Below are positions 1,204 to 42,561 of a DNA stretch of 64,000 nt, piece after piece. The notes under the pieces were generated by a model. The model searched no databases. It was not told the DNA's origin and worked only from the letters and a program-made list of their open reading frames with translations. A program made the position numbers and the translations under genes. Origin of the DNA: Vitrella brassicaformis CCMP3155 (Eukaryota; Protista; Chromerida); assembly GCA_001179505.1 (NCBI GenBank), contig CDMY01000366.1, positions 310,001-374,000 on the forward strand, written 5' to 3'. Position 1 is the first letter of the stretch. The number at the start of each line of letters is the position of its first letter.

Positions 1204-4200
1204 CTACGTGTTCCTGTCGGTAGTCCTGTGTACGAAACAGCACCCACACGTTACCTCCCTCACTGTCATATCCCCATTCCCTCCAGCCCTCCTGCCGCTC
1301 TCCTGGACATCACAGCCCCGCGGGCACCCTCCACGCGGCCCTGTGTCGATATGTATGTCTGGCGGCCGCTCGGGCCCCCCATGACCGGCCCTGCCCTGCG
1401 GCAGTGGAGATGCACTTGTGTCTCTGCTGCTGCAGTGTGTCTCGAACACCGGCACACTCCTCCTGTGCGGCTGGTCGCTGACGGGAGAGTCGCTGGGTAT
1501 CGACCGCTGGTGCGTTGGCATGGACCTGACCATTCTTGTCACTGCCGGTCTTCCGGTCATCTGGTCCCTCTCAGCAAACTCCTGTGTCGAATCCGCACTC
1601 ATCTGGAGGTCGTCATCCGTATCTCCCCTGCTGGCTGGCGGATGGGGGTGTTGGCCGGAGTAGCCCCTCGGTGAAGTGATTGGGGTTTGTTCCGCCATGT
1701 CGATGTAGTTGTCGATGCCCTCCCTCACAAAGGCGGGCGATGCCAACACGTCGACGGCCTTGTGTTCAGGGGAGGAAGGGGAAGCCGCGCGCAGGGCGGG
1801 GATGTCTCCCACGGCCTTCTCGCCATTTGCGCGATTGTAATTCTCGAGCGCTCTTTTTTGCGCCATGGCCAGTTCGATCAGCTTCCGAAACTTCTTTCGT
1901 TTCCGCGCACCCTGTCCCGAACGGAAAGATACAGAGACACAAGTCGGTTTCTCTTGTGATCGGTTCGTGTGCGTGCAGGTGTACCTTCCAGAGAGCCTGA
2001 ACCTTGAGTGCGGCCGCCACTTGTGCAGCAGAGTACATAGTGTATTTCTTCTCGTCTGGCTTCCGTTGGGGGAACGGCAGCACCCGCGTGATGTTCTTGT
2101 TGATGAGGCGGAGAGCCTCGCAGTCGGCCACCTGCCGCATGTCAGCCCCGCTGACACATGACGCGAGGCTCCACAGCACCTCCATGAAGTGCACACGCCC
2201 GCCGTGGTCCTTGACGCCCAGGTTGGCGATGATCTGAAGGAGGGTGCCTCTGCAGACAGACAGAGGACAAGACATTGCTATGGAAGGATAGTGCAGGTGT
2301 GTCTGTGTAAGTGTGCTGCTGACGCGGCGAAGACCTCCCCCTTGAATCCCAGTGGAGGCTCCAGTTCGGCCAGCAGCAAGGGCAGCTGACCAGGAGCGGA
2401 GAGACACACACGTTCGTCCAGACTCTTGTTCTCGCCATTCATTCATATGTGTGTACGCACCTTATGCGTTGGCAGCCAGACCTCTGCGTTCGGACAAAGT
2501 CGAGCCCATGCGCTGATGTAGCGGTCCATGTCCATCTCAGACAGCAAACGGAAATTGAGCCGCTGCACAGAAAGGGAAAATGCATATCTGACCATTGGCA
2601 GCCTTGCTTTGTAGTTACGTCATCTGCGATGTCTGAGAAGTTTTCGAGGATGACGGCGATGAAGAGATTGATGAACATGAAGGACCCCAACTGACACGTG
2701 ACGGCAGAGCCCGTCTGTCTTTTTGTTTGCTGGTTCCTTCCTTCATATGTTATGTGCACGACGCGACCTACCAGCGTGAATGAGCTGAAGTAGATGATGG
2801 CAAAAGTGGTGCTGCCACAGTCCTGCGTATATCATCAATACATCAATCAATCCAGTCTGTCTCGCCTGTCCACAGCTGAGCTGTGTATGTGGAGTACCGA
2901 CCGCTTTGCCGTCAAAGGCATTGCAGTCCTTGCGGGTGAAACAATCATGCATCAGGTCATTCCTGCATCACAACACAACAAGTGAAGTGAGCACATTCAC
3001 CCGGCGCTCGGCATTCAAAGCCCTTTTGTGTCATTCATGCGCACCATGCCTCCCCAGTGGCCATTCTGAAGAGTGTCATCATGGCGTAGTAAAAGGTGCT
3101 GAAGTTGGCGTCTTCATTTAGCTCCTTGTTGCCCTCTTGCGGCAGCTAGACACAATCAATGAATGACACACAGGCAAGCCGATCGTGAGTAAGTCCGGCA
3201 TATCATTCAATTGGCTGCGTACCTACCCGTCCGAACAAGGCCATCCCAGCCACCGCATAGACATAGAACAGTAGCAGCAGTAGAGCACTGAGCAGAGACA
3301 CAGCGAATGGGCGGGACGTCCAACGGCTGTTGTGTCTCGTTGAAGACCTTACCCCACATTGACGAGCGACGGAAGCGATGACAACAGCGTCTGAAACAAA
3401 TTGCGAAGCTGCCGCAGCGACTGAAGCCAAATGAACAAATGCATAAGTGGTGCGAATATTCCGATCAGTAGTCTGACCTTGATGAGTCTGAAGAGCCGTG
3501 CGATCCTGAGGATGCGGAGAATCGTCGTGTCGAAACCCAGCTCGACTGCAGCAGACACACGAAAGTCGATGATGTTGACACGACATACGGGCGCACGCCA
3601 TGGCAGCTGCACTACCAGCGTTAGATTCCTTGATGATGATGCCCAACATTGGCAGCATGACGGTCGCGAAATCAAACACGTTCCAGGGGTCCTGATAGAC
3701 CGTGTGCACGAATCTGCTGTTGGTGTGCACATTTCTGAACAAACCTGGAAGTATATTCTCGGTTTGAATGCGATGATTTTCATCAGAACTTCACACCCGA
3801 ACACAGCCAAGAAACAATTGTTGGCCTGGAAAAGGCACAAACGGCAGATGGGTGGACCGAATTGCCTGTCTCTGTCTGCGCGCACAATATTTTGGAAGTC
3901 GCTTAGCGCCTTTGGGGCTTCCCAGAATCCGATAGCCAGCACCTGGACGCAAAGACAACACGGTCATTCCATTGCAGGTCTCCTATCATATAGTGCTGCT
4001 TACGATAGCATTGAGTATGATGCACACGAGCACCGCGATCTCAAACTCAGGCCGAGACACCCAGTGGAGAAGAAAACGACGCAGACCGCTCTTCTGCAAA
4101 ATCGATTGAACCGAAAGCACTGCACTGCACGCCTACTTGGCTCTTTGTGTATGTATCGTCTCACTCACAGGTCGCCTGAGGAGCACTTTGGGACGGATTT

Positions 4201-33960: not shown

Positions 33961-34689
33961 CACGAGTCGACAGGTAAAGGCACATGCACTGAGTGAGGAA
34001 TCCTTCCACACCAAACGATCCTCTGTGTGCAGAGGCGCCATGGTGTCTCTATGCACGTCTCTCGTTTGTCCCTCGATTGCGTGCAGAGTTCATTGCTGCC
34101 TGCATTTTATATTCTTGATGTCACTGGACCGGCATGACTCAGCTACCAATCATACACTCAGGCATCTGCGGTGTTGGCTAGACCGCATGGACCACACTCA
34201 CAGACCACACAAACATAACATCGCACTTACCACACATATCGCAACATATCACATATCTGTCACCACTCTGACAGAGCGTCACTCAACGAGCTGAAGGTAC
34301 ACATACGCACAGAGAGAGAGAGAGAGAGAGATTATGTAAAGAGAGGCATTCAGAGGTGTATGTGTCTTGTGGTTCAGGACACACTGTGTCGTTGGCGTGA
34401 CGACCCGACAAGAACAATCTCTGTACATGTATGCCAAAGGCGGTGCAGCGTGAAGTGTTTGCGGTGTTCCAAACTTGATCAATATCGATAATATATTGCC
34501 ACCCGTTCCGTCTTCCTCTAGCTAGACGTGAATGCATTCATGTCCGCTGGCCGACCAGAGTCACAAAGAAGTTGATGGACTCCACAGACCACATATACAC
34601 TACATGACAGCGCAACCACACACCAAATGTCTATCCCCTCGCAGGCCTTCTCAGCTCCTGTCACATCACACGTCCTTCCCCCCTCCGGA

Positions 34690-35879: not shown

Positions 35880-37398
35880 ATGAACTTCTTCGGTTTGGGC
35901 AAGAAGAAGTCGCCCTCTCCGCAGGAGCTGTGGCGGCTCATCCGTTCCGACCTCGAGAAGCTCGAGAAGCTCGACCCGACTGCGGCCGACAGCAAGCACC
36001 AGATCGACAAGCTCAACAAGGACGCGGCCGAGCGGCTGACGCAGGTGCTGAGCCACCTGCCGCTGGCGACCGACTACGAGGACAAGCAGCTGCCTTCGGA
36101 CGAGGCGCGTGACGCCATCGTGAGCAGCATGCTGAGCGACGACACGCTGGTCATGATAGCCCGCGACCTGGGCAAGTACGAGTTCGAGGTGAAGCGGCTG
36201 GTGAGCCAGATATTCTCCAACCTGATGACGGCCAAGGAGGAGGAGAGCGGCAAGCGGCCCGCACTCGAGTATGTCCTCAACCACAAGACGCTCATCGACC
36301 ACCTCGTGGCGGGGTACGAGGCCAGCGCCTCCGGCAAGCAGCCCACCACCGTCCCACACGTGGGCGAGATGCTGCGTGCGTGTGCGGGCTACGACGAGCT
36401 GGTGCGGTACGTCTTGGAGACGGGCCACGTGTACCGCCTGATCGATGCAGTGAAGCTGCAGAACTTCGACGTGGCCAGCGACGCCTTTGTGTCGCTGCGT
36501 GAGTTCCTGGTCAAGAAGAAGAACGCGTCGGCCGAGTTCATCCAGGACCACTTCGACGAGTTCTTCGACAAGTACTGGGAGATACTCAACACGTCCAACT
36601 ACGTCACGGTGCGGCAGAGCCTCAAGGTCCTCAGCGAGCTGCTCCTCGACCGCACCTTCCTCAGGCCGATGCTCAAGTACGTCAAGAACGAAAAGTTCCT
36701 CATGCTCCACATGGACCAACTCAGGTGCCTGGGGAGGGGAGCGGGCAACACACACAACACACGGGCGCGGCGCATGGGTGTCAGTCATCCTTTGCTGTGC
36801 TGTGCTGTGTTGGTCGTGGTGGTGTCTTATGTGTAGGAATGAGAGCAAGGCGATAGCGTTTGAGGCGTTTCACTTGTTCAAGATCTTCGTGGCCAACCCG
36901 CAGAAGCCCCCGAGGGTCCACAAGATACTCTACGCCAACAGAGACCGCATCATCAGATTCCTCAACCAATTCCTCGTCGACAGGTACGTCACAGACACAT
37001 CACGCCCCACACCCACACAACGGCTCTCAATCCATCGCATGGCCCCATTGTTCTCCAGGGAGGAGGAACAGTTTGTGGCCGACAAGCAGACGATTCTGCA
37101 GAAGCTGGAGCAGCTGCCCCCGCCCCCCGACTCCCCCACACAGACCCAGGCCGCACCCGCCACACAGCAGCCACAGCCACAGGCAGAGGCTGAGGGCGCG
37201 AGTGGGGAGCCCACAGCGCCACAGCAGCAGCAGCAGCAGCCGGAGGGCCACGAGAGGCCTGAGGAGCAGCCACCAGCAGCAGCAGCAGCGTCAGCGTCAA
37301 GTGATGCGCCCCAAGAAGCGCCAGCAGCAGCGGCAGAGGCGGCCGTTGCGGGCAGCGGCGAGGCAGCACCCGAAACGGAGACTGGGGGAGGGTCCTAG
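35880..37398 (+). CDS. CAB39: MO25/CAB39 calcium-binding scaffold protein
   Basis: KKSPSPQEL, FEVKRLVSQIFSNL, GEMLRAC, FDVASDAFVSLREFL, NYVTVRQSLKVLSELLLDR, AFEAFHLFKIFVANP. Confidence 0.95.
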
Positions 37399-38845
37399 CA
37401 AGTGTGTTACCCGCGGGGCTGTCTGGTCGATCCGTAGCTTCCCCTCGTCGGTGTTGGTCGGGCTACTTCCGAGTGTCTGCGTCTCTGTCGGAGTGTGTGT
37501 GTGTGTGTGTGGTTGGTGGGATGGGTTTTGACGGCGGTTGGTCGGGTGAGCTGTGTAGCGGTGGATGGCCTGCCTGCCTGCCTGCCTGTTTAAGGGGATC
37601 AGGGGAGAAGCAGCCGCTGGCACTGCTCAGATTCTTGATTGCTTTGTTTGTCAGTCCACCCATCCATGCATCCATCCATCCGTCCATCCGTCCACGAGAA
37701 ACACCGTCACGCGTTGGTTGGTTTTTGTCCATCTTGGGGTAGGTTAGTTGCCTTTTGTTGCCTTCTGTTAGTGGTCGTCTGCGTGTAGACGAGTGTGTGC
37801 ACTTGCCCGCGCCTTCACACCAACGAGAAAACACTCCGTGCCTAAACAAACAGCATGGAACGGTTTCTTGTTCGTGTGGCGACGGCCAAGTGCACATACT
37901 CATCCACGAGGACAGATGGAGAGCTCTGCTTTTCCTCTGGTGACTGATTGACGGGGGCAGCCGTCTGTGTGGCCAGGGGCCCTTTGGGTGGGATTCCTTG
38001 ATCTATCCTGTACAGTCATCGATCAGACAGACAGAGATTTCGTCTCGTGGGGTTTGCGTCTCCCTTGTCTGAGATTCCTTTCTGTCGGCCTGCGTAGCAT
38101 TGTGACGGCCGGTGTATCGCCTGTGCGTGACACAGCTGCGCGCCGTCGACGGGAAAGGCCCTCAGACAAGGGGTTTCAAACAGGGGCTGTCCATTGGGTG
38201 TTTGCGGTGCATGCCGCTCTCTGCTTGTGTACATGGCGATCGCTATGCTGCTACGCTCTGTCTTGTCTGTCTCATTATTCCGAGTTTTGGTCTCTCCTCT
38301 GTTCCTTCCCCTCTCTCTCTGGTCTGCCTGGACCATCCATCCATCTGTAAATACCTCACTCACTCACAACTTCTTGACTCATCAACTTCCCTTCCTCTGT
38401 CTCTGCAGACTCGCCTCGCCTCGCCCTCTGTCTAGCTGGCTGGCCATGGGTGCATCTGTCTGTCTGTTTTTGCTCCATCCGTCAATAATGAATGACGCTC
38501 ACTCGATGCCATTAACACATACGATGCCGTGTGTGTATGTGTGTATGATGCGTGTTGACTTGAATTGCATGGCATGGATCCCTCCCTCCCTCCATCCCTC
38601 TCTCCCTCCGTGGTGTAACTAACTACTTCTTTGACCAGCCACGTGCAAATTGTCACACGCACGACACCATCAACAGACCCGTTTTCACACACACACTGAA
38701 CAAGGAACGGCTCTTCACCAGCACTAGACAGACAGACAGACAGACGGACACGCTACACACAAACACGTGGGGGGGAGAGGGGCCGTCCACCACATCACTC
38801 CAGTACGTACTGGCAACTGGCAGGCCCGTCGTGCATGTGCCAATC

Positions 38846-38912
38846 GTCCACACACATCCGCTTGGCAAGGCCCAGGCATGTGGGTTGTCTCGCCAACCTT
38901 CACTCGTGGGAC
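38846..38912 (-). promoter_or_regulatory. Type II SECIS element in the SelT 3' UTR
   Basis: Minus strand reads GUCCCAC-GA-GUGAA-GGUUGGCGAG-AC-AA-CCCA-CAUGCC-UGGG-C-CUUGCCAAGC-GGAU-GU-GUGUGGAC. This gives the UGAA/GGAU core, helix II, unpaired AA, apical mini-stem and helix I. Confidence 0.85.
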
Positions 38913-39027
38913 TCTCCAGGCACCGCAGCCAACGTCAGCCAGCCAGCCAGCCGACTGATGGAGGGATGGATGGAAGGACGGACAGCGGGGGCGGAGGGAG
39001 GGGGGAGGAGGGGGACGGGGCGGCGCC

Positions 39028-40009
39028 TTAGAGGGCCACTTCGATGCCGGCTTCCTTGAATGTTGTCATGATGTCATCCATCTGGGGCAACCGACCCTCG
39101 CTGAATCACACACACATACACAGAAGGGCGAGAAGGCGTCATTTGGCGACCGCGGTGCACATCAGTGTTCTTTTTGAATGCACACCTGAGGCTGGACCAC
39201 ACGAGTTGTCTTCCCTTGTAGATCTCGAAGGCGTGGGTGGCCGTGAGCGTCGACTGCACCAGATTGCCGACGAAGAAAAGGACTACGAACGACATCATCT
39301 TGTTCTGCTGCAACCTGCACACACACACACACACACAGGTGGTCGGTCCGTCTGACTAACATATGTGTGTGTGATGGTTGCCGTACGCGTCGATGAGTGG
39401 TGGTGTTGGGTCCAGCCCGAAGAATTGACATATGGTGGTGCCGGCGAAGACGCATGCGAACCCAGACAGCTGAACCACCATGGCTACCGACGCCATGCTC
39501 TTCCGAAGACCGCTCGGCTACACATACATACAATGGAATCTACCGTTTCGTGCTGTGCTTGCCGTCCGTCCGTCGACGCGCGCGGCGCGCGTGTGTGTGT
39601 GTGTGGTCGCCTGGCTGGCTTACTGACTGACCTCGTAAGGGACGCCCCTGACCCGGTAGTTGACGACGGAGCGGGTGTTGATGAAGTTGGCCACCTGCTG
39701 CGCCGCCCCCTTGTACTGTCAGGACTGGCAGTACTGAATCGTGATGGTGTCCTCGTCCACGTCAGCTGGTAAAGGGTTGACCGCACGCCAGAAACTCCCA
39801 TTCGTACCGAAATACCCTCCCTCCCCCTCGGTGGCAGTCCCTGGCCTCCTCTCCCTCTGATCTTCATCTTTGGGTAAATGGTGGCGCTCGTGCGGCTGCT
39901 GACTTGGTCCTCCTTCTTTGATGGAGGGCGCTGTGAGATCCTGCACCAGTCGGTAGGCCACCAGAGCCGCCACAAAGGCAAGGCCGTAGTGGTATGCTTG
40001 CAGCTGCAT
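39028..40009 (-). CDS. SELENOT: Selenoprotein T (4 exons: 40009-39632, 39517-39387, 39314-39186, 39100-39028; Sec UGA at 39721-39719; 236 aa)
   Basis: TIQYCQS-TGA-QYKGAAQQVANFI reads through as a CxxU motif. Downstream exons QNKMMSFVVLFFVGNLVQSTLTATHAFEIYKGRQLVWSS and GRLPQMDDIM match SelT. All three splice junctions are in phase, and a SECIS lies downstream. Confidence 0.93.
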
Positions 40010-40225
40010 ATGCCGATCTAAGGATGTCCTGCGGCTACTTCTGAGAGGCCAGCCACGCCCTGAGGCGCGTTTCGGCTCTTCATTGCTGCGCGAGCTTCGC
40101 TGTTGCGCACCAGCGGTTTCAGGGAACGCCCTAGGGAGCTACCCCCGCAGCTTCCTGTTGTGCGCGCAGCGGTCCTCTGTGGGTCTGGGTGCACCTGCGT
40201 GCGAGGAGTGTGCAGACCGTTGGCC

Positions 40226-42561
40226 ATGCAGTCGTGTGGGTGGATCTGCTGCAGACCAGCCCAAGTGAGGGACCACAACGAGCTGCTCGTCCAGGACAAT
40301 GGTAGGAGGCAATGGAGGCCAGATCACACACGACAACGCTCCCACATGCCCAATCGCTCTTGCGTATTGATCTTTCCCTCCCTCCCTCTCCCCCGCAGGT
40401 GTGCACGACGCCAACGCCATTCAGAGCATCCCCTCTGCCGACGGTCAGCTGAGGAAGCAAGGCAAGATGCCCATTCACAACCCACCTCTCCATCAATCTG
40501 CTCTACTCTGCTTGATCCATGTATCTCCACTTCAGGTGTGCGCAGTGTGGTGGTTCCGCGAGGCTCCAGGAGGGACACAATCTACCAACCGCCCAACGTG
40601 TTCCAGCTCGTCACGGGCACTGCGGGTGTGATGCAGCAGATCCTGCAGGAGAACCAGGGCGGCCCCATCGCCTTTGACGCGCCCATCGAGGTGGACGAAG
40701 AGGACAACTACGTCCAGGAGGGCGGACACGTATTCGTCAACGGCGTCGATGGCGCTAAGCAGACGGCAGAGAAAACCATCTCTACCACGGTCAGTGAGCC
40801 AACTGCGTAGCCGCAGATATCGAGATAGCCACCGGTCTGTTTGTCTGTTTCTTCTGTCTGTCATTCTTGAATGCAGACGCTGTCACCTGGCGCGTCGATT
40901 GACCACCTGCAGGATGGGATGGAGGCCGACGCGGTGCGGCCGCGCGTCGCCATGCGCTTGCTGAGTCGGACGGGCGACAATGTCGAATGGCTCTCCTTCG
41001 AGGAGAGAATTCTCGTCGGTCAGTGCAGGAACACCAAGAGAGACAGACGGTCAGACAGACGGTCAGACAGACAGACAGACAGACAGAGAAGCAGGGAAGC
41101 AGGTCAGGAGCCCATTGTTGTCTACGTAAGGCGCTGCCTGTCTGCAGGCCGTTTACGCGAGATCCTCGCCAAGGATTTGGCAGAAGTGCCTGCGTTTCCT
41201 GAGCTGACGGGCGACATTCGGCTGTTGCGGTTCATCCGGAAGTATGCCCGGCCCCTCCCACGCGCACACACCGTCGACATGGACGCCGCCAAGCGCTCCG
41301 GCGCTCACCGCAGAAAATCACCACGTCGATCGCCGTCCGTCAAGCTCTCAGATCTGGTATCACCTTGAGCTGCAATGAGCATTGAGTGCCCATGCAGCCC
41401 AGTGTGTTGTCGGCGCTTTTTGTTTGCAGGAGCCCCGGCTGCAGCAGGTCGCCAAGAAGTACCGTGCGATGCTCAAGTGGCGGCGTGAGAACCAGGTGGA
41501 CGAGGTGCGTCAGGAGATTGTGAGCAGGGACATGACGGTCAAGCAAATCTATGAGGAGAAGCAGGGCAACCTGGTGTGCGAGTTCTGCCCCACCGAGATG
41601 GCCTGGGGCGTCGGCAAGAACCCCAGGGGCGAGACCAGGCTCGTAAACATCGAGGTCCCCGGCACCTGGAACACAAAAGGTCCGTCGGTGGGGTGGCCAC
41701 ACACACAAACACACACACACTCACGCACACACACGAGATGGGATCCATCGAGCCGGCCAAGAAAGAACGCATCCACTGGGGTCTGTCTGTCTGTGTCATG
41801 TGTCTGTCGTGTGTCATTCAGGTGCTGTTGGTGCATTGCGTAAGGGCAAGCTGACAGTGGATGAGTTCGTGCGTTTCTGGATCTACATCGTGGAGTTCCT
41901 ATCCATCCAGCTGGACACCCTCTCCCGCCAGGACGGACGGCTGGCCTACATATGCGAAATCGTCGACCTCAAAGGACTGCACATGGGACAGGTAGGTCTA
42001 CCTGCTAACCAGACAGACAGACAGACAGAGACGACAGACGTGCTATCACGGCAAGGTGATCAGATCTCATCTCGTGTGCCTCCCTGTGTGTGTGTGTGTG
42101 TGTATCTATGCAGCTGTCTCCTGCGTTTTTCTCGTCTCTGTTGTCGCCGTGGGTGTCGTTCATGCAGGCGCACTACCCCGACTTCCAGGTGGACGAGATC
42201 GTGATTCATGCATGGGTGCGACATGGGTGCGTTGATTCATGCGCAGGGCGAGATCGTGATGATTAACGCCCCAGGTGTCTTCAAGGCCATGTGGAAGGTC
42301 TTCTCGGCACTCAACCTCATCGACGAATTCACCATGAAGAAATTCATCGGACTCAGGTCACCACACACACACACACACACACCGCACACACAGGTGGACC
42401 CAGTGTGTGTGTGTGTGTCGATTCATTGATGCAGTGGTGAGATCAAGGATCTGAGAGGCTGGTGGAACAAGCTGGAGGTGGTCCCCCTGGACCACACACG
42501 CACTCTGCGGTTCGCCCCAGCGGAGATAATGGAGGAGGACGACCTCAATCTCACTGTCTAG
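40226..42561 (+). CDS. SEC14/CRAL-TRIO lipid-binding protein (multi-exon)
   Basis: GDIRLLRFIR, YRAMLKWRRENQVD, EIVDLKGLHM, MQAHYP, IVMINAPGVFKAMWKVF. Confidence 0.88.

Follow-up and report, generated by a model that had tools for sequence, protein, structure and literature searches.

The locus at positions 39028-40009, on the minus strand, of the 64,000-nucleotide stretch of Vitrella brassicaformis CCMP3155 DNA analyzed here (hereafter, the window) is, with high confidence, the selenoprotein T (SelT) gene of this chromerid, consisting of four exons and containing a UGA at codon 97 that is read as selenocysteine (Sec). We infer the insertion of Sec itself, and the internal UGA almost certainly encodes it. 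A first-pass annotation, made from the sequence alone, had interpreted the locus as selenoprotein T with a UGA recoded in a CQSU motif; the gene structure, the transcripts, the homologous proteins and the Sec machinery genes of Vitrella described below support this interpretation.

Structure of the Vitrella SelT gene

The coding sequence begins with the minus-strand ATG at 40009, the earliest possible start downstream of the preceding in-frame stop, and extends for 96 codons, ending with ...ITIQYCQS, to the TGA at 39721-39719. Past the TGA, the frame is open for 29 more codons (QYKGAAQQVANFINTRSVVNYRVRGVPYE), until a GT donor at 39631. Three GT..AG introns, all joined in phase, define a coding sequence (CDS) of 4 exons and 711 nt, that is, 236 codons and the stop, in which the TGA is codon 97, within the motif YCQS-U-QYK. 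The features of the locus, all on the minus strand, are the following:

40010..40093 (-): 5' leader, minimum extent; the X1 contig (record 3) reaches 40093
39632..40009 (-): exon 1, coding part; ATG, N-terminal hydrophobic anchor, charged linker, CQS-U motif, 29 codons
39719..39721 (-): in-frame TGA, codon 97 (CQSU); second-Cys column of CxxC
39648..39725 (-): 78-nt 'intron' called falsely in the public entry CEM06465.1; excises Ser96, the TGA and 24 more codons
39518..39631 (-): intron 1, 114 nt, GT..AG; joint 39517>39632 in X1, X2 and X7, absent in X3
39387..39517 (-): exon 2, hydrophobic SelT-specific insertion; from alignment, hydropathy and contig pieces
39315..39386 (-): intron 2, 72 nt, GT..AG, with a (GT)n repeat; contigs have 5 letters between 39387 and 39309
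39186..39314 (-): exon 3, SelT block of highest conservation (NKMMSF...THAFEIYKGRQLVWSSL); HMM score 40.1 bits
39101..39185 (-): intron 3, 85 nt, GT..AG; joint 39100>39186 in X1, X2 and X7
39028..39100 (-): exon 4, coding part, with TAA at 39030-39028; from alignment, with a 100% tblastn match of P0001
38835..38925 (-): SECIS candidate, type II; GUGA 38903-38900, AA 38886-38885, GA 38858-38857

Several elements of this model had been proposed in the first-pass annotation, namely, that the open reading frame (ORF) halts at YCQS* yet the frame runs on past the TGA, that splicing proceeds in phase through three more exons to a 236-aa protein, and that the 96-aa N-terminal part carries a hydrophobic anchor and a charged linker. 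All are confirmed, the splicing by both the sequence and RNA contigs. The anchor corresponds to residues 8-22, which are hydrophobic (Kyte-Doolittle 1.77), and 17 of the 36 linker residues are charged; hydropathy peaks at 2.09 in exon 2 and at 1.89 in exon 3.

Transcript evidence

The contigs of four public runs (X1, X2, X3 and X7) were compared with positions 38000-40400 of the window. Runs X1, X2 and X7, which derive from two or three studies, are small assemblies of transcriptome size, and run X3, which is DNA-like (100% of words, colinear with the genome), served as the DNA control. The evidence from the runs consists of assembled contigs rather than raw reads and speaks to presence, not to abundance or transcript ends. 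One contig in each of X1, X2 and X7 skips exactly 39101-39185 and 39518-39631. Between 39387 and 39309, the X1, X2 and X7 contigs contain exactly 5 letters, matching the 72-nt intron 2; the gap of 5 letters is explained by the aligner having absorbed 'gt' and skipped the (GT)n repeat of this intron. The junction across intron 2 reads ...LIDALQQNK in the public proteins P0001, P0022 and P0023.

The spliced contigs are colinear with the window over 39632-40093, 39632-40067 and 39632-40020, with 0 differences; exon 1 is thus covered without differences, so the TGA is present in mature RNA. None of the 4 runs contains any other letter at the TGA. Retention of the UGA in transcripts, which the first-pass annotation had named among the observations on which its reading could fail, is accordingly seen in the spliced contigs of X1, X2 and X7. 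In X2 (record 8) and X7 (record 19), the contig carrying the CDS extends through 38616 or beyond, which places the proposed SECIS on the same transcript contig.

The leader also contains a 21-codon upstream ORF (MKSRNAPQGVAGLSEVAAGHP*) in a different frame (ATG 40083 to TAG 40018, minus strand), which overlaps the leader only and lies within the RNA contig reaching 40093. On the other side, a Mo25-like gene (PF08569, 197 bits; window 35880-37400, plus strand) converges on the SelT gene. One RNA contig (X7 record 19) extends from the CDS of SelT to beyond 38000, so that the 3' ends of the SelT and Mo25-like genes may overlap or may have been merged by the assembler.

Public gene models of the locus

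The protein cluster of the post-UGA product contains CEM06465.1 (UniRef100_A0A0G4F3Q4), a V. brassicaformis CCMP3155 protein named 'Selenoprotein T'. The first-pass annotation had called the selenoprotein 'hidden', which is an overstatement given that UniRef already attaches this label to the mis-spliced model. The sequence of CEM06465.1 (P0022, 210 aa) reads ...ITIQYCQ|GVPYEPSG..., and the loss of the catalytic selenocysteine and 25 adjacent residues is accounted for by a false intron called to avoid the UGA. A joint for the 39725-39648 intron was found in none of the runs, the contigs passing through the stretch. The JGI calls split the gene into a 96-aa ORF (P0024) and a 131-aa ORF (P0001) from the Val right after the TGA, and the MMETSP call is a 103-aa ORF (P0023) from an internal Met in exon 2. 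As the first-pass annotation had anticipated for standard gene callers, the gene is truncated or mis-spliced in all of these models. The junction residues predicted by the splice model, LID-A-LQQ and SSL-S-EGR, are common to these public gene calls. A homologue search with P0022 retrieved its own cluster only. The gene model presented here corrects CEM06465.1 (A0A0G4F3Q4), and re-annotation of this entry is worthwhile.

Family assignment and the position of the UGA

The exon pieces (1a, 1b, 2, 3 and 4) were searched and aligned singly; the joined forms are represented by the public proteins P0001, P0022 and P0023 only. In a six-frame Pfam search of the genome (72.7 Mb, 1064 contigs), the Rdx domain (PF10262) was detected at window 39185-39748 with 21.2 bits, or 24.1 bits with neighbouring pieces, for a cut-off of 22.6; the small margin is due to the split of the domain over four exons. 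The five exon pieces compared with Pfam one by one gave nothing useful, being too short. Against the Pfam Rdx model, the public post-UGA fragment P0001 scores 19.1 bits, and the relatives P0016 and P0017 score 34 bits and 62 bits, respectively.

Exon 3 alone (42 aa) identifies 21 proteins at E<=0.001 among 1.84 billion, most of them 100-150-aa ORFs that start just past the expected CxxU motif. One relative, P0017, a Cys-type SelT-like protein of 252 aa from a nematode and of full length, led to 86 named SelT-like proteins; 12 of these made up the reference alignment, to which the five window pieces were added as separate rows. The pieces tile the 12 named proteins colinearly: piece 1a places ...YC-QS under ...YC-IS and is followed by one empty column and then by piece 1b (QYK under GYK), and the empty column, at the TGA, is the second Cys of C-x-S-C in the 12 proteins. 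A hidden Markov model (HMM) of the same 12 proteins assigns Ser96 to node 84 and Tyr2 of piece 1b to node 87, so that the TGA corresponds to node 85, a Cys. The UGA thus aligns with the Sec/Cys column of SelT-like sequences, at the second Cys of CxxC, which is where the first-pass annotation had proposed that it should lie. With this HMM, exon 3 scores strongly by itself (40.1 bits); the other pieces, though weak individually, occur in the expected order and register. In the alignment with the named SelT-like proteins, exons 2 and 3 match the hydrophobic insertion by which SelT differs from SelW and SelH.

A second Rdx locus was detected in the genome (L001, G000:C104:162217-165591, minus strand; locus 1880-1810), with the sequence ...IEIE|YCVGCRWML... 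Its candidacy as a paralogous selenoprotein was rejected: the protein is of the Cys type (CVGC), and the two TGAs inside the match are intronic.

For six truncated homologues, from different samples, the contigs were fetched. In all six, a TGA (C-x-[S/A]-TGA) occupies the Sec column, right upstream of the called ORF, in the motifs YCSS*, YCSS*, YCIS*, FCKA*, FCTS* and FCSS*; metazoan homologues have Cys at the UGA column. One of the six, L017, shares the whole N-terminal architecture (M..LLAYRLVRDL...NPLPPNV...TVTVQFCTS*), and its pre-TGA ORF and that of the window align end to end (E 1e-09) with the same stop column. BLASTP of the 29-residue post-UGA piece against L017 yielded no alignment, the piece being too short. 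A TGA that is maintained in the column of a catalytic Cys, flanked on either side by similar sequence, is the classical hallmark of a selenoprotein.

The L017 contig (JGI 3300017196, 1712 nt) is an intron-less SelT transcript contig with the anchor motif AYRLVRDL and NPLP...FCTS-TGA, and possibly comes from a close relative of Vitrella. Scans of the homologue contigs L017 and L026-L029 for SECIS gave nothing convincing, for which truncated 3' UTRs or elements that deviate from the scan pattern may be responsible.

A candidate SECIS element in the 3' UTR

The best SECIS candidate in the 2 kb downstream of the stop has a GUGA core that starts 125 nt after the stop. The core is followed by 1 unpaired nt and a 10-bp helix II (GGUUGGCGAG/CUUGCCAAGC, with one G.G mismatch), and the apex consists of an unpaired ACAA (AA 38886-38885) and a CCCA/UGGG mini-stem. 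The unconstrained minimum free energy fold of 38925-38835 (-37.3 kcal/mol, z -2.4) recovers every part of the SECIS shape, helix I among them. With a simple SECIS descriptor (RUGA, a 9-12 bp helix with <=1 mismatch, AA, GA), 6 sites were found in the window's 128 kb, compared with 3.7 +/- 2.0 in shuffles, and the probability of a chance descriptor match within a 0.5-1 kb UTR is about 0.01-0.03. The full SECIS fold is present at only one of the 6 sites, 38925-38835; the other descriptor matches, at 34092 (-), 22273 (-), 18665 (+), 58863 (+) and 63427 (+), are without it, and their number lies in the range of the shuffles.

The Rfam SECIS_1 model gave no match in the 3' region (2.3 kb or 131 nt), even at E<=10, and none in all six homologue contigs, so that the model is insensitive to these protist sequences. 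In the whole genome, SECIS_1 produced two sub-threshold matches only, one of which is the true SECIS of a Sec-containing glutathione peroxidase (GPx) gene; the other (L020), which has no evident gene upstream, is probably false. The candidate has the same geometry as the Sec-GPx SECIS of Vitrella, with 1 nt, 10 bp, NCAA and a mini-stem; the layout of the latter is AUGA, 1 nt, 10 bp, UCAA, mini-stem, 10 bp, 1 nt and GA. With a covariance model derived from two further SECIS-like hairpins of Vitrella, namely, the GPx SECIS and a GUGA hairpin beside a deiodinase-like gene, 38925-38835 ranks 4th in 128 kb (13.4 bits, E 0.25), and the three matches ranked above it have most of the structure deleted. 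A covariance model from the GPx SECIS alone did not recover the candidate at 38925-38835. Two alignments were discarded: in a MAFFT alignment of several SECIS, the structural elements did not line up, which made it unusable, and a model-guided alignment of three SECIS loci was contaminated with junk matches.

In Ostreococcus, SECIS elements normally have a G-type core and a long mini-stem, SelT being the standard illustration (PMC2375036), and such elements are also documented in Chlamydomonas and sponges (PMC3473315). The first-pass annotation had stated, without coordinates, that a SECIS is present; a SECIS-shaped hairpin does occur at 38925-38835, on contigs that carry the CDS, but Rfam misses this hairpin and the statistics are modest.

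Selenocysteine machinery and the predicted product

The genome encodes components of Sec biosynthesis and decoding, namely, tRNA-Sec, SepSecS, SelD and eEFSec; of these, tRNA-Sec and EFSec had been listed by the first-pass annotation among its tests. The tRNA-Sec scores 71.6 bits with Rfam (gathering score 47) and has the anticodon TCA according to ARAGORN; SepSecS and SelD/SPS are each present as a multi-exon gene. For the first exon of the eEFSec gene, the best match in the PDB is human eEFSec (5izk), with 183.5 bits, followed by archaeal SelB with 103 bits and by EF-Tu and eIF2-gamma with about 70. Exon-by-exon searches of the genome for PSTK (TIGR03575) and SelK (PF10961) gave no match, which does not imply absence.

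From what is established about Sec decoding in eukaryotes and about SelT, the proposed mechanism is one in which the type II SECIS candidate in the 3' UTR, ~125 nt past the TAA, would recruit a SECIS-binding protein (SBP2), which would bring eEFSec with Sec-tRNA(Sec), such that the ribosome inserts selenocysteine and does not terminate. The predicted product consists of 236 residues, with an N-terminal hydrophobic anchor or signal, a charged linker and an Rdx-family thioredoxin-like fold. Its redox centre would be Cys94-x-x-Sec97, and the fold would be interrupted by a hydrophobic segment tying SelT to the ER membrane; the protein is a putative ER-located oxidoreductase.

Alternative explanations for the in-frame TGA

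Three other explanations, namely, termination at the UGA, the public intron, and an error or nonsense allele, are improbable even when taken together. If the UGA were a true stop, the gene would produce only a 96-residue anchored peptide, and translation of any downstream part would start at the internal Met of exon 2. Gene callers yield exactly such ORFs (P0024, 96 aa, and P0023, 103 aa), and Sec insertion is a step that we infer; nevertheless, the 29-codon stretch from the TGA to exon 2 is open and aligns with helix alpha-1 of SelT, the TGA is conserved at this column in 6/6 homologues with similarity on both sides, and both a candidate SECIS and the Sec machinery are present. Furthermore, a thioredoxin-like fold could not function if divided at the redox motif. 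Termination at codon 97 is therefore very unlikely.

Even less credit can be given to the possibility that CEM06465.1 is right and that a 78-nt intron at 39725-39648 removes the UGA, resulting in a 210-residue protein without Sec. This intron does have GT..AG ends and a length divisible by three, but the spliced contigs, which come from three runs and two or three studies, are colinear through the stretch and show no such joint, and its removal would delete the second redox residue along with the next helix, both of which are kept in all homologues. The least plausible of the three is that the TGA is an artefact of assembly or sequencing, or a nonsense mutation peculiar to this strain, in a Cys codon (TGT/TGC), so that the gene would encode a Cys-type SelT or be a young pseudogene. 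Cys-type SelT-like proteins are indeed common, for example, in nematodes and insects; against this stand the four runs without any other letter at the TGA, the six independent homologue contigs that also have TGA, and the SECIS candidate in the 3' UTR. Recoding of the UGA as selenocysteine remains by far the preferred explanation.

Comparison with known SelT systems

Mammalian SELENOT, an Rdx thioredoxin-like oxidoreductase of the ER membrane, resembles the Vitrella protein in having CxxU at the start of the fold, with Sec in the second position, a UGA codon and a 3' UTR SECIS, a candidate one in the case of Vitrella, and its hydrophobic insertion and conserved GAFEI...WSKL block are colinear with those of Vitrella. 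The motif is CVSU in mammalian SelT and CQSU in Vitrella. In Vitrella SelT, the region ahead of the motif is far longer than in the mammalian protein (96 residues, including the charged linker), and the core of its SECIS candidate is GUGA rather than AUGA; a metazoan-based SelT HMM scores most Vitrella exons weakly. In Toxoplasma gondii, the core of the SelT SECIS is reportedly an unusual GGGA (Novoselov et al. 2007), compared with the GUGA of Vitrella. A review (PMC9344019) deals with the role of SELENOT in the ER in association with OST.

The SelT genes of the marine algae Ostreococcus tauri, O. lucimarinus and Thalassiosira are similar to that of Vitrella in encoding Sec, predicted in the case of Vitrella, and in a SECIS with an unpaired G preceding the UGA quartet and an apical mini-stem (PMC2375036, PMC3473315), as in the Vitrella candidate, but green algae and diatoms are lineages different from the chromerid alveolate Vitrella, and the likeness is drawn from published descriptions. 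Compared likewise by description, T. gondii provides an example of an alveolate SelT with a type II SECIS (PMC3737529). The Cys-type SelT-like proteins of nematodes, rotifers and insects (P0017 and the CG3887 homologues) share with the Vitrella protein full-length colinearity, the N-terminal anchor and a variable acidic linker, but have Cys (C-x-S-C) at the position of the UGA and need no SECIS.

The literature search returned no paper mentioning selenoproteins of Vitrella or Chromera, and a 2020 survey of algal selenoproteomes covered Symbiodinium as the only alveolate. On balance, we are inclined to consider the gene described here the first documented Sec-containing SelT in a chromerid, belonging to an undescribed, fairly rich selenoproteome and equipped with a green-algal-like G-type mini-stem SECIS. 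If so, this would imply that Apicomplexa descend from a photosynthetic ancestor with a broad selenoproteome, which the parasites later reduced. Vitrella SelT adds to the evidence for selenocysteine use in chromerids and bears on the shrinkage of the selenoproteome towards parasitic Apicomplexa. As a family member, the gene is unremarkable and implies no new mechanism: SelT is among the most widespread eukaryotic selenoproteins, the UniRef name is in place and G-type SECIS are known, so that what is new is a correct model of a gene of a known kind.

Other candidate selenoprotein loci in the Vitrella genome

The GPx gene (L019, G000:C249:98240-101311) contains NVASK-TGA-G at the active site, with the TGA at locus 560-562, and an AUGA type II SECIS at ~1511-1561 (+), which scores 29.3 bits with Rfam SECIS_1, below the gathering score; the Pfam GSHPx search of the genome did not list this locus. 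Deiodinase-like (PF00837) genes are located at G000:C386:44160-44802, C638:11397-12029, C255:107261-108042 and C768:11426-11796, and three of them contain an in-frame TGA. SECIS-shaped hairpins were found downstream of those at C255 (AUGA core) and C768 (GUGA core), the deiodinase-associated hairpin coordinates being L033 1137-1201 (-) and L030 2814-2875 (+); the C768 hairpin has the context cacgaGUGA, as does the hairpin in the window. Finally, several tRNA-like matches and an intron-less EF-Tu-like ORF (selB model, 178.6 bits) were detected on G000:C467 (28277-28812, 61578-62495, 68335-68420), which is probably an organellar contig in the assembly.
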